Sequence record: NC_061449.1
Length of the DNA: 64,000 nt
Reading direction: 5' to 3' (one strand)
This document shows, piece after piece, positions 24,045 to 29,298 of the stretch (positions are counted from its first letter, which is position 1; each line of letters opens with the position of its first letter). The notes below the pieces were generated by a model. That model ran no database searches, was not told where the DNA came from, and was given only the letters and a program-made list of their open reading frames with translations. The position numbers and the translations under genes were made by a program.

Positions 24045-24550
24045 ACGAATTACCGATGAACCTCGATCAGGCTGAACACATCATGGCCAGTGTGTTTACG
24101 CTTGCTGGCGCATCGAAGTCTAAACGCCGCGCTACCGCTGCGATGTTGATTCACTTCCACAATGGCTTCCCTACTGTGATCAGTAGCGGTGTTAACGGTA
24201 CTGAGCCTGGTGCAAGCAACGTCATGGAGAACGAAGACCTGACTCTTTCTCTCGACACAGTTATCCATGCAGAGGTGAACTGCCTCAACCGCATGGAAGA
24301 ATACAGCATGTGGGCGAACGAAGAAGACATTCTGTTTTGCACCGACTCACCGTGCCCGAACTGTCTTGCTGACCTCGAAGCCGAAGGCGTTAAGACCGTT
24401 GTGTACGCGCGTGAGTATCGCCTGACTGATCATCTGGACGCATCTCCCATCAAGATGTTCTGTCTGGATATGGACAGCGTTGTCCAGCGTATGCAGCACG
24501 GCATCGACCGCATCAAAGAAGTGATCGCAACAACACCAGCGTCTAACTAA
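24029..24550 (+). CDS. dCMP deaminase-like zinc deaminase
   Basis: SSGVNGT, HAEVNC and SPCPNC zinc motifs, VVYAREYR. Confidence 0.85.
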   Translation: MRCNLNELPMNLDQAEHIMASVFTLAGASKSKRRATAAMLIHFHNGFPTVISSGVNGTEPGASNVMENEDLTLSLDTVIHAEVNCLNRMEEYSMWANEEDILFCTDSPCPNCLADLEAEGVKTVVYAREYRLTDHLDASPIKMFCLDMDSVVQRMQHGIDRIKEVIATTPASN

Positions 24551-24575
24551 GACCAATAACTGAGAGGCTCTCAAC

Positions 24576-25328
24576 ATGGAAAGCAAATTCGAATCGGGTT
24601 TTAAATGCCGCCCTCTGACTAAAGAGCAACAGGACGAAGCGTTCCGTGCGTTCGATAGGCAGCAACAAGAGTCACTTGAGCGTCTTGTGCAGATGATTGA
24701 ATCTGATCCCGTGTTGAGGGCCCAGCACGAAGCGGCTCGTCGCTATGACCACCAGCAGAAGTTTGGTAACTTAGACTTCTCCAAACTCGAAGACAGGGTT
24801 ATGGCTAATGCTGTCATGGGTAGCATGTCTTCACCGCGCAGTAACATCGAAGAACTTTCTGGTACGCTTGAACATTCGTCAGGTGTTGTTCGTGGTGTTG
24901 TGCAGCGCTTCCCGCGTATGTCAGATAACCTGCCGCGTGATGGTCGCATTAAAGTTGACGTAGCACCAGGGAAACGTATGCTGCAAACTGATATTCATTT
25001 GGGTAATGTGAAGACTGCTGATTTGACTGACGCTATTGCCGCAGTTGCATTCGGTCTTAGTGGCGAACAACTTGGCGTTATTCCTGCTGAGTCTGGTGGT
25101 GGTCAATCTACACCAGAACATCTCCCTCTGCATTATCTGCAATCTGAGAAGGGTCCAGACTACGTTACGGTGGATGCTAAGACAGGACAGACCGTTCACA
25201 TCCAGTACAAAGCGGGTGGTGGGTGGTCTGCTGAACGTCGTGATCGTGCTGCAACGTCAACTTCTGACCGCAAGAAGCTCCGTGCTAAAACACGCGCACA
25301 AAAGAAAGCGCGCCGTAAACAACGTTAA
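24576..25328 (+). CDS. hypothetical protein with basic C-tail
   Basis: 250-aa ORF. Confidence 0.65.
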   Translation: MESKFESGFKCRPLTKEQQDEAFRAFDRQQQESLERLVQMIESDPVLRAQHEAARRYDHQQKFGNLDFSKLEDRVMANAVMGSMSSPRSNIEELSGTLEHSSGVVRGVVQRFPRMSDNLPRDGRIKVDVAPGKRMLQTDIHLGNVKTADLTDAIAAVAFGLSGEQLGVIPAESGGGQSTPEHLPLHYLQSEKGPDYVTVDAKTGQTVHIQYKAGGGWSAERRDRAATSTSDRKKLRAKTRAQKKARRKQR

Positions 25329-25337
25329 GGTATTGCT

Positions 25338-25826
25338 ATGTCTGATTTTAATGAGTTCAAAGATAGTTTTCTTCGAGCTGTTGGTGTAGACCCAAAACTG
25401 CTCGACTTACCCGAAGACCCAGATGGTGCTGAGATCTTTAACAGCCTATCCTCCAACGATCAACGTAAAGTCCGAATAGGTCTTGCGTTGATGCAACTTC
25501 AAATCCCTGATGAAGTTCGTTATGAGTTGCTAACGAACCATCTGGACGAAACTGAGCGTCTGGTTAATACTGCGTATCAGGACCTGGGTGCCTCGCTTGT
25601 GAACAAGCTGGCTCAAGCAGGCGACGCGGAAACTAAATCGACACTCGGTAGTGTTCGTCTGGCTATGCTGATGAACATTCTGGGTTTTGATGATGCCACT
25701 CTCACTGGCGTCTTGACCGACCCTATTCTCGCTCGTCGTGCCAGCCTTGTTGCTGTGACGTGCATGAACGAGATGGGTCAGAAAATCCAACAATTGTACG
25801 ACGAGAAAAGCAATGAGCCAACCTAA
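25338..25826 (+). CDS. hypothetical protein
   Basis: 162-aa ORF. Confidence 0.65.
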   Translation: MSDFNEFKDSFLRAVGVDPKLLDLPEDPDGAEIFNSLSSNDQRKVRIGLALMQLQIPDEVRYELLTNHLDETERLVNTAYQDLGASLVNKLAQAGDAETKSTLGSVRLAMLMNILGFDDATLTGVLTDPILARRASLVAVTCMNEMGQKIQQLYDEKSNEPT

Positions 25827-25977
25827 CAATCCATTAGCAGATTACTTCAACGCAGACGCAGTTATCCCAGGCGTAGACGACGCAGAAGATCGTGTCGAAG
25901 CTATGCGCGACGGAGGCGGCGAAGTCGTTGACGATAAAGATGCTGATGGTTGCGAAAGCGGCGCCTGTAAAATCTAA
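25813..25977 (+). CDS. 54-aa protein mimicking the C-terminal redox tail of ribonucleotide reductase alpha (NrdA)
   Basis: Translated by hand: MSQPNNPLADYFNADAVIPGVDDAEDRVEAMRDGGGEVVDDKDADGCESGACKI*; E. coli NrdA ends …TRDG…QDDGCESGACKI; below the ORF-track size cut-off. Confidence 0.75.
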   Translation: MSQPNNPLADYFNADAVIPGVDDAEDRVEAMRDGGGEVVDDKDADGCESGACKI

Positions 25978-25980
25978 CTC

Positions 25981-26003
25981 ATGGGGCCTAGTGCCCCATT
26001 TTT
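25981..26003 (+). terminator. intrinsic terminator
   Basis: ATGGGGC-CTAGT-GCCCCAT then TTTT. Confidence 0.7.
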
Positions 26004-26015
26004 GTTTTGGGGAAC

Positions 26016-27848: not shown

Positions 27849-28198
27849 TGCCTCCTGTAATTCGTTTCAACGAACAAACCTGCGAACTGCTGAAAAAGAC
27901 TTTCGGCATTGATTCACCTTTCATTGTCGTGCGTCGTGAGCGCATCATCGAAGACGGTAAGCCTTTCGGTGAGCGTGTCTATTTGAACAACGGCATTCAC
28001 ACCGTGACTGTGCCTAACGTACAGGGTCTCGACTTCGGCGATAAGCTGTATCTCGCCGAAGATATGGAAGTGTATGAGTGGCACCCGCACTTCGGCCTTC
28101 ATCCTACCATTCATCATTCTGTAAGCAATAACCAGAAGACTGCGCTCTCGTTCGGCCTTCATCCTATCATCTACCATAAAGACAGTCGGAACTCTTAA
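27848..28198 (+). CDS. hypothetical protein with duplicated C-terminal FGLHP motif
   Basis: 16-bp direct repeat TTCGGCCTTCATCCTA at 28091 and 28151. Confidence 0.6.
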   Translation: MPPVIRFNEQTCELLKKTFGIDSPFIVVRRERIIEDGKPFGERVYLNNGIHTVTVPNVQGLDFGDKLYLAEDMEVYEWHPHFGLHPTIHHSVSNNQKTALSFGLHPIIYHKDSRNS

Positions 28199-29298
28199 TG
28201 AACAAGCAACCTCTTGATCTGCGCGATCCAAATCAATACGAAGTTTACTCTCTGCACTGCGTAGACGAACAGTACATCAACCTAGGCAACGCTATTCTGG
28301 CGTGTGGTACTGACGAATCAGATCTCGGTCGCACCGAAGATACGTGGCGTACTCTGATTGGCGTCGGCTTCCAGTTGTCTAATACACTGATCGCTTTCCC
28401 TGCGCTGCTGTCTGCACGTAAGAACTGGTTCGCTGCTGTGGATGAAACCTGCTGGTTCATGCGCGGCGACACGAACATCAGCACTCTCCAGTCTAAAATC
28501 TGGAACGAATGGGCAGATGAAGAAGGCGAATGCGGTCCTATCTACGGTGAGATGTGGCGGCGCTGGCCTGACCTGAAAGCGTACTACGACTACACGCAAC
28601 CACAGCACTCTGAGCCTACTGCTGAGATGATTCGTGTGCGTAACGAAATCCTGCGTATGCGCGAAGACGGGTATATCGAAACGCAACTGACTGACGGGCG
28701 CATTCTGTTCGAAGGTCAGATTGACCAGTTCGCTAACGCACTGCATCAGGTTATGGCGCGTTCTCGCTCTCGTCGTATTCGCGTTCAGGCATTCAACCCT
28801 GCGTATCAGAACATGCAGGGTCTGCCTCCGTGTCACACCGAATTTGAGTTCAATGTGACTCAGCCTACTCAGTACGAGATCGCACAGATGGAAGCGCGCG
28901 GTATGGCTCCGTCTGACGCATCGTTGCATATCGTTGTGACCATGCGTTCCAATGATGTGCTGCTCGGGCGCCCGTTCAACATCATGGGCTACAGCGCGAT
29001 GCACCAACTGATTGCCAAGTGGGCTGGGTTGAACGTAGGTAGCTTTACGCTGAACACGACGAACACGCATCTGTATACGCATCACTTCGAAGCGTTCGAA
29101 CAGCAGAAGCAACAATGGGCGGCGCTCAGTGACCTGATGAAGAAAACTGGTCAGCCTATTCAATACCCGCTGCTCGAAATCAGCGACGACATTCTCGGCC
29201 TAACGCCAGAAGAGTTGCTGGACAACGCAACGGTCGAGTGGTTCCAACTTCTCGACTACTCCCCTGCACCAGCAGTCAAAGGGCGTGTTACCAAATGA
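28198..29298 (+). CDS. thyA: thymidylate synthase
   Basis: IWNEWADE…GPIYGEMWRRW, RR, LPPCH catalytic Cys, RSNDVLLGRPFNI, HLY. Confidence 0.92.
   Translation: MNKQPLDLRDPNQYEVYSLHCVDEQYINLGNAILACGTDESDLGRTEDTWRTLIGVGFQLSNTLIAFPALLSARKNWFAAVDETCWFMRGDTNISTLQSKIWNEWADEEGECGPIYGEMWRRWPDLKAYYDYTQPQHSEPTAEMIRVRNEILRMREDGYIETQLTDGRILFEGQIDQFANALHQVMARSRSRRIRVQAFNPAYQNMQGLPPCHTEFEFNVTQPTQYEIAQMEARGMAPSDASLHIVVTMRSNDVLLGRPFNIMGYSAMHQLIAKWAGLNVGSFTLNTTNTHLYTHHFEAFEQQKQQWAALSDLMKKTGQPIQYPLLEISDDILGLTPEELLDNATVEWFQLLDYSPAPAVKGRVTK

Follow-up and report, generated by a model that had tools for sequence, protein, structure and literature searches.

All de novo synthesis of DNA precursors passes through ribonucleotide reductase (RNR), and the step in which the enzyme is re-reduced by way of the C-terminal tail of its alpha subunit has long been studied. 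It is known that phages can supply complete RNRs, thioredoxins or individual subunits themselves, and fungi regulate the enzyme with small disordered proteins, which include Spd1, Hug1 and Dif1 in addition to Sml1. In yeast, regeneration of the catalytic Cys pair cannot proceed without the C-terminal Cys pair of the large subunit (R1), through which this subunit also interacts with thioredoxin or glutaredoxin, and Sml1, a short and disordered protein, acts on this subunit by hindering regeneration by the C-terminal Cys pair (PMC6382339). Small proteins that duplicate the C-terminal catalytic segment of a large enzyme have been described for pyruvate formate-lyase, namely YfiD (GrcA) of E. coli and Y06I of phage T4, in which the N-terminus is disordered (PMC8683613). 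The subject of the present analysis is gp038, a protein of 54 amino acids (aa) encoded within bases 1-64000 of the genome of Erwinia phage pEa_SNUABM_17 (NC_061449.1, 263,916 bp; Alexandravirus; host Erwinia amylovora), a stretch referred to here as the window. As judged from its sequence, gp038 is a detached, free-standing copy or mimic of the C-terminal redox tail of class Ia NrdA, the RNR alpha subunit. No report of a detached RNR alpha tail in phages, and no description of the gp038 family, was found in the literature.

When gp038 was compared with the tail of E. coli NrdA (residues ~735-761, with Cys754 and Cys759), both were found to share the last 10 residues, an R-D-G anchor, an acidic flexible linker, the CX4C spacing and a Lys-Ile end, and in both the two cysteines lie no more than 10 residues from the C-terminal end (Cys47 and Cys52 of 54 in gp038). 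In contrast to the NrdA tail, gp038 is not attached to an RNR catalytic domain (the Ribonuc_red_lgC barrel), comes from a phage without RNR, carries a family-specific acidic N-terminal region of ~30 residues, and has a Gly-rich linker that is four residues shorter. Since gp038 has every sequence feature of the NrdA tail and lacks solely the link to an RNR, it is tail-like but no RNR subunit.

The likeness to GrcA/YfiD and Y06I is one of architecture only, as all of them are free-standing copies of the C-terminal catalytic segment of a large enzyme preceded by a disordered N-terminus. They have no sequence relation to gp038, which gave no glycyl-radical match in Pfam, NCBIfam or PHROG, and they provide a glycyl-radical loop that replaces a cleaved segment, whereas the chemistry proposed for gp038 is thiol-disulfide exchange, and no loss of the host tail is known. 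As a phage-encoded spare part for a host enzyme, Y06I (PMC8683613) is nevertheless a precedent for a helper role of gp038. The Sml1 group resembles gp038 in being short, disordered and directed at the large subunit, but its members show no sequence similarity to it (no Pfam match), are cellular, checkpoint-controlled inhibitors and contain no copy of the tail. A further parallel is offered by the orphan, host-like NrdB of Serratia phage PCH45, of phiEcoM-GJ1-like phages and of several nucleus-forming jumbo phages, where a phage lacking NrdA also supplies a part of the host class Ia RNR; this part is a full-length enzyme subunit, is absent from pEa_SNUABM_17, and co-occurs with the tail family in PCH45.

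The last 10 residues of gp038 (DGCESGACKI) were identical at 10 of 10 positions to residues 752-761 of E. coli NrdA, both in PDB 2xax_A and in the translated nrdA of the chromosome NZ_CP015229.1; a preliminary description of the window had equated this end with the E. coli NrdA C-terminus, and rightly so. In a multiple alignment, the T-R-D-G that marks the end of the ordered core of NrdA lay opposite R32-D33-G34 of gp038, therefore the likeness covers the whole flexible tail. Near-identical ends were detected in the NrdA of two phages, Proteus phage Privateer and Escherichia phage A73. A scan of bacterial genomes with a degenerate DNA pattern, covering the last 10 residues and a following stop codon, retrieved at least 120 stretches; all of the matches listed (120 of 120) were ends of NrdA-like open reading frames (ORFs) from Enterobacterales, five of them from Erwinia-labelled genomes.

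By score alone, the match between gp038 and NrdA was not significant, with E values of 0.78, 1.6 (PDB 2xax_A) and 1.2 (family profile against the PDB). A family profile built without the window-type allele and run against 177,635 PDB sequences matched E. coli NrdA as its sole hit, end-to-end. With the last 28 residues of gp038 as the tblastn query against 2.3 Gb of phage DNA, the 60 matches listed of 83 were family members and extreme C-termini of phage class Ia NrdA, apart from two uncertain rows, one weak (a hypothetical protein) and one from an unannotated record. Since the match runs end-to-end at both C-termini, the profile retrieves only E. coli NrdA from the PDB and the listed tblastn matches are almost all family members and NrdA ends, chance is an unreasonable explanation of the likeness, and the observation is regarded as confirmed. 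A recent capture from a host nrdA was considered on the basis of DNA identity, which did not discriminate: the last 33 nucleotides (nt) of gp038 agreed at 29 of 33 positions with E. coli, at 25-31 with the 120 listed Enterobacterales stretches and at 24-28 with other family members, and these values indicate no single bacterial donor.

The distribution of the family was followed by tblastn of gp038 against 50,697 phage records. Full-length free-standing homologues were found in Alexandravirus, Sasquatchvirus (Y3), Snuvirus, Yoloswagvirus, Salmondvirus (Dickeya phages JA11, JA13, JA29 and JA33), Miamivirus (Klebsiella, Raoultella and Stenotrophomonas phages) and Maaswegvirus (FBKp24 and relatives), as well as in Serratia phage PCH45, Salmonella phages SA002 and SPLA10, Yersinia phage phiR1-37 and further Erwinia jumbo phages. 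Among the matches listed, every record with such a copy was larger than 200 kb and came from an Enterobacterales jumbo phage, one being labelled Stenotrophomonas. On this search the family is present in several unrelated jumbo-phage lineages; the conservation in relatives on which the preliminary description had made its reading depend was thus found, with frame and stop intact in dozens of genomes of several genera. When 1.84 billion representative proteins were searched exhaustively with a profile, six clusters emerged: five of 44-58 aa and one of 259 aa with the tail at its C-terminus. Their members are encoded on metagenome contigs that reach 268 kb in length. Two close relatives of gp038 were obtained by a word-indexed search, and a search of IMG/VR gave nothing beyond copies of the isolate genomes already found.

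No match for gp038 was detected in the Pfam, NCBIfam and PHROGs libraries. Two of its tblastn relatives, Klebsiella phage Miami gp244 (E 2e-4) and the C-terminus of Yoloswag gp34 (E 1.1e-10), matched phrog_10239 of PHROGs v4, a family of unassigned function and with no noted RNR link, whereas gp038 itself did not match that profile at E <= 0.01. By way of the tblastn links (gp038 to Miami, E 4e-4; reciprocal, 4e-4) and of the shared architecture, gp038 probably belongs to this jumbo-phage family of small proteins.

Residue counts were made on 18 distinct family members. The Cys pair was present in all 18, with the second Cys always third from the end, and so was the terminal Ile; a Lys at -2 was present in 16. 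The spacing between the cysteines was of four residues (CX4C) in 16 members and of two (CX2C) in the other two, Y3 and Yoloswag. A Gly-Gly-Gly-Glu run lay 7-9 residues ahead of the first Cys in 16 of the 18, and the last 50 residues contained 13-17 acidic versus 2-4 basic residues. The positions that are invariant in the family are those that define the NrdA tail. As thioredoxin-type reductants accept many disulfides, such strict conservation would point to the fit to a specific pocket, beyond mere reducibility. Additional cysteines were observed in two members: Dickeya phage JA11 gp019 (L019:3884-4138) has an N-terminal extension with a second CX4C, and that of another member, P0005, has four Cys within nine residues. 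These motifs hint at metal binding or at a second redox site.

In comparison with Dickeya phage AD1, the gp038 protein was 100% identical, and the only three of 165 bases that differed were synonymous (98% DNA identity). In contrast, gp037, the gene directly upstream, differed from its AD1 counterpart at 122 of 489 bases (25%), with 47 non-synonymous codons and 75% DNA identity, and the 569 bases downstream of gp038 differed at 52, the flanks thus diverging by 9-25%. This pattern of substitution indicates that gp038 is under purifying selection. The opposite was seen against phage pEa_SNUABM_23, with 86% protein identity for gp037 and 63% for gp038. Taken together, these comparisons place a recombination boundary between gp037 and gp038 (25338-25977). 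From the opposite identity patterns it follows that two gp038 alleles, of 54 aa and 52 aa, circulate in Alexandravirus and are exchanged at the gene boundary; the NrdA-identical end belongs to the window allele.

To look for an RNR in the phage, the NrdA and NrdB proteins of E. coli, Privateer and A73 served as tblastn queries, the genome beyond the window being searched piecewise. Except for the 10-residue tail, no nrdA or nrdB homology was detected anywhere in pEa_SNUABM_17, whatever the frame. All 36 of its ORFs of at least 450 aa were compared with Pfam, and the 24 families listed include none for an RNR, irrespective of class. Both results refute the idea, put forward in the preliminary description, that the tail could serve a tail-less phage RNR. 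The other possibility raised there, that the ORF is a decaying remnant of nrdA, is contradicted by the lack of further nrdA homology in any frame together with the conservation of gp038 and the purifying selection on it. A phage RNR split into several genes was also considered and discarded, as no remaining nrdA pieces exist elsewhere in the genome. A crude scan of small ORFs for CxxC motifs of thioredoxin or glutaredoxin, which is a weak test, gave no candidate in pEa_SNUABM_17 or PCH45. Among the same large ORFs of pEa_SNUABM_17, one contained Radical_SAM plus Fer4_12 domains and two contained intein splicing domains. As pEa_SNUABM_17 has no RNR of its own, it depends on the host NrdAB for deoxyribonucleotides.

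A related situation was found in PCH45, which carries the tail family and encodes a NrdB (L027:26783-27889) with 80.6% identity to E. coli NrdB, whereas no NrdA was detected by tblastn in its whole genome. The combination of NrdB without NrdA and the tail family suggests that such phages depend on the host NrdA. Jumbo phages, both nucleus-forming and other ones, often encode a host-like NrdB: proteins with 77-80% identity to E. coli NrdB were also present in pEt-SU, Survivor, Kc263, OBP, AH04, N1M2 and Ea35-70, and in the 52-kb phiEcoM-GJ1-like phages, and the phages with host-like NrdB were absent from the 40 most host-like phage NrdA matches. PCH45 and Erwinia phage RAY leave the host chromosome undegraded (PMC10299810), and the gene table of phiR1-37 includes eight nucleotide-metabolism genes but no reductase (PMC4848604 supplement). 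With NrdB but no NrdA of its own, and with host DNA undegraded, PCH45 therefore represents at least one carrier that invests in a working host NrdA, which argues against an inhibitor.

The features of the gp038 locus are collected in Table 1. The preliminary description had seen here a 54-aa ORF with the DGCESGACKI end, followed by a terminator, located near the dCMP (deoxycytidine monophosphate) deaminase and thyA genes and missing from the annotation. The ORF is exactly as described, the genes for dCMP deaminase and a ThyA-family protein flank it, and a stem-loop (25981-25999) followed by a T run is found 4 nt past the stop codon; the annotation is not lacking, as RefSeq NC_061449.1 includes MPK72_gp038 as a hypothetical protein. 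Annotated terminators lie directly 3' of the homologues in Klebsiella phage Miami and Yersinia phage phiR1-37 as well. The genes gp035 and gp036 (24056..25328) lie on the same strand as gp038, no terminator on the + strand was predicted before gp038, and the three probably form one operon. The overlap between gp037 and gp038 suggests translational coupling. An AlphaFold2 (AF2) model of gp038 was mostly coil (mean predicted local distance difference test score, pLDDT, of 54), with short predicted helices at aa 7-11 and 24-33, and the protein is predicted to be intrinsically disordered.

Table 1. Coordinates of gp038, its parts and its neighbours in the window.
Feature	Position	Strand	Description
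dCMP deaminase (gp035)	24056-24550	+	Upstream context of gp038
gp036	24576-25328	+	250 aa; between dCMP deaminase and gp037; no family match
gp037	25338..25826	+	162 aa; all-helical (AF2), function unassigned; directly upstream of gp038
gp037/gp038 overlap	25813..25826	+	14 nt; gp038 in +1 frame relative to gp037
gp038 (MPK72_gp038, YP_010302497.1)	25813..25977 (including stop codon)	+	54-aa NrdA-tail-like free-standing peptide, ATG start; ORF list and RefSeq
gp038 N-terminal half, aa 1-31	25813..25905	+	Acidic, family-specific, without NrdA counterpart (alignments)
gp038 NrdA-tail-like half, aa 32-54	25906..25974	+	R-D-G anchor, acidic Gly-rich linker, Lys-Ile end
gp038 Cys47	25951-25953	+	First Cys of CX4C
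gp038 Cys52	25966-25968	+	Second Cys of CX4C
Intrinsic terminator-like hairpin	25981..26009	+	7-bp stem with 5 G-C pairs, 5-nt loop, T-rich run; ends transcription unit
ThyA-family gene	28198-29298		Downstream context of gp038; Pfam 1.2e-54

Among the neighbours, gp036 has a strongly basic, Lys/Arg-rich C-terminal tail and is kept between dCMP deaminase and gp037 in related phages. The ThyA-family protein, annotated in RefSeq as hypothetical, has 366 aa, of which 341 residues cover 264 Pfam positions, and is ~100 aa longer than the model; a variant type of enzyme that modifies pyrimidines is a possible identity. The gene order of dCMP deaminase, gp036-like gene, gp037-like gene and tail gene is common to Alexandravirus (AD1, SNUABM_23), Y3 and SNUABM_7, whereas Miami, PCH45 and phiR1-37 have unrelated genes upstream of the tail gene.

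In Alexandravirus, Sasquatchvirus (Y3) and Snuvirus the tail gene directly follows a gp037 homologue, which is not the case in Miami or PCH45. The AF2 model of gp037 had a pLDDT of 70 and a predicted template modelling score (pTM) of 0.43; Foldseek found no match to it in the PDB at E < 1, and no match to the protein was found in Pfam, PHROG or NCBIfam. None of the columns that are invariant in an 18-sequence alignment of gp037 is a Cys. One of its homologues, P0016, comes from a 266,333-bp sequence labelled at NCBI as Salmonella enterica serovar Infantis, which looks like the genome of an Alexandravirus-like jumbo phage submitted as part of a bacterial assembly. A programmed frameshift that would fuse gp037 and gp038 was considered and rejected, since the overlap is of 1 nt in phage Y3, with another frame relation, in place of the 14 nt and +1 frame found here, so that a conserved frameshift fusion is unlikely.

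In two cases the tail was found as the C-terminus of a larger protein: Yoloswag gp34 (146 aa), and P0008 (259 aa), which is encoded in a PCH45-like metagenome contig at the position of the small gene. Their N-terminal parts had seemed by eye to resemble gp037 and so to be a shared fusion partner, but were unrelated to it by hhalign (probabilities <1%). Three genes upstream of P0008, the same contig encodes a protein with an AcrVA2-like Pfam match (L150:1526-2809). Regarding expression, g117 of phiR1-37 (L017:3959-4114), a clear member of the family, is nearly silent, with RNA-seq values of 3.9, 1.5 and 1.2 compared to thousands for its neighbours (PMC4848604 supplement). This gene stands alone, with its own predicted host-type promoter, ribosome-binding site and terminator, in contrast to gp038, which lies inside a probable operon and shares bases with the gene before it.

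Once a phage RNR is refuted as the partner, a host-directed role is the best remaining reading of gp038. Its likeness to the NrdA tail and its location in a nucleotide-metabolism cluster, which counts for such a role, indicate that it probably acts on the DNA-precursor supply of the host. That it would do so at the electron relay between the host NrdA and thioredoxin or glutaredoxin, in whichever direction, is a proposition to which we incline, whereas its action as a helper, an extra or spare arm that shuttles electrons in trans for the host NrdA, is put forward tentatively and with less than even confidence. Two points favour the helper role: the carrier phages need the NrdA of the host, and a matching NrdB is even contributed by PCH45. 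According to this model, gp038 would be translated from the dCMP-deaminase operon, its Cys47/Cys52 pair would be kept reduced by host thioredoxin or glutaredoxin in the manner of the NrdA tail, and its terminal Cys-x-Ile end would enter the active site of the host NrdA. There, it would swap its dithiol for the disulfide of the catalytic cysteine pair and could in this way sustain host RNR turnover in trans during phage DNA synthesis.

Some support for the activity of a detached tail comes from PDB 1qfn_B, in which a free 25-residue NrdA tail was solved as a separate chain; we take this structure to be a mixed-disulfide complex with glutaredoxin-1, which presumably makes the detached tail a competent glutaredoxin substrate. 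In yeast, Zhang et al. are said to have found in 2007 that the tail can act on the neighbouring subunit and that Sml1 competes with the tail. A wider form of the helper role, which is more doubtful, is that the family hijacks host deoxyribonucleotide synthesis, with a diffusible tail that inserts itself into the host enzyme, for which its acidic N-terminal half may serve as an anchor, and that redirects or enhances re-reduction, maybe together with the orphan host-like NrdB in nucleus-forming phages.

Several observations weigh against a role at the host NrdA. The host enzyme presumably keeps its tethered tail, so that the gain from a diffusible copy is not obvious, and the match spans only 10 to ~23 residues, with a score that is not significant by itself. 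Two members have CX2C although the NrdA of their hosts presumably has CX4C. The absence of NrdA in carriers was established by a full search in two of them and by annotation in a third. The low RNA of g117 counts against universal expression, and the tail also occurs fused to the unrelated N-terminal domains of Yoloswag gp34 and P0008, fusions that are explained no less well by a portable redox tail with other partners.

Such a tail, which would dock thioredoxin or glutaredoxin on behalf of phage partners (gp037 in this locus, the fused domains elsewhere) and have no role at an RNR, is unlikely on balance. In addition to the fusions, it would account for the translational coupling to gp037 in three genera and for the extra N-terminal cysteine motifs of JA11 gp019 and P0005. 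Nevertheless, the neighbours upstream of the gene are unrelated in Miami, PCH45 and phiR1-37, gp037 lacks an invariant Cys, hhalign revealed no shared partner domain, and the strict terminal Cys-x-Ile exceeds what recognition by thioredoxin or glutaredoxin would be expected to need. The identity to the tail and its conservation apply equally to an inhibitor or decoy, which would contend with the tail of NrdA itself for access to the active site, or tie up the host thioredoxin or glutaredoxin, and so lower or redirect RNR or thiol-redox capacity. The block of R1 regeneration by yeast Sml1 is a precedent for it (PMC6382339), and gp038, being small, acidic and predicted to be disordered, resembles the known RNR-binding regulators. 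A likeness to NrdB C-termini, which would suit a blocker of the beta-subunit site, was scored above that of shuffled sequences for the N-terminal half in Miami (fraction of shuffles with at least the observed score, 0.003) and FBKp24 (0.034), and for the sum over 15 members (0.037), but not in gp038 itself (0.94); mimicry of the NrdB tail is therefore unsupported for gp038 and a weak lead for other members. Moreover, a 264-kb DNA phage without RNR needs the RNR activity of its host, an inhibitor of NrdA would defeat the pairing in PCH45 of the family with a host-like NrdB, and a substrate with two cysteines would resolve mixed disulfides and so be a poor trap for thioredoxin or glutaredoxin. 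Inhibition is thus judged improbable.

Two further explanations were also considered. A metal-binding or otherwise unrelated acidic peptide, the Cys pair of which converged on the NrdA pattern by chance or through shared chemistry, would be compatible with the weak score of the match, with the existence of CX2C variants and with the extra Cys clusters of JA11 gp019 and P0005, which hint at metal sites. It is very unlikely, as the alignment is end-to-end and includes the R-D-G anchor, the window allele is identical at all of the last 10 positions, and NrdA makes up nearly all of the other matches in large searches. The probability that gp038 is a non-functional leftover of a deleted nrdA, or a spurious ORF, is close to negligible: its short length and the scarce transcription of one relative, phiR1-37 g117, would agree with it, but no frame shows further nrdA homology, the frame and stop are kept intact across genera, the N-terminal region is family-specific, and all three differences from AD1 are synonymous in the midst of diverging flanks.

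In its sequence features, gp038 is a viral, free-standing form of a well-known enzyme arm, and the likeness provides a first testable functional lead for the conserved ‘hypothetical’ family phrog_10239. If gp038 serves phage partners instead of the host enzyme, it would define a portable thioredoxin- or glutaredoxin-docking module. If the family does hijack host deoxyribonucleotide synthesis, the phage would reconstitute a hybrid RNR out of the host alpha subunit and phage-supplied accessory parts, and gp038 would be the first viral ‘spare arm’ for an RNR, a new kind of metabolic mimicry. Should gp038 act on the host NrdA, it would be a natural trans-acting probe of the entry of the tail into the active site, and would show how jumbo phages without RNR, including the nucleus-forming ones that spare the host DNA, secure the precursors for genomes of 200-300 kb.

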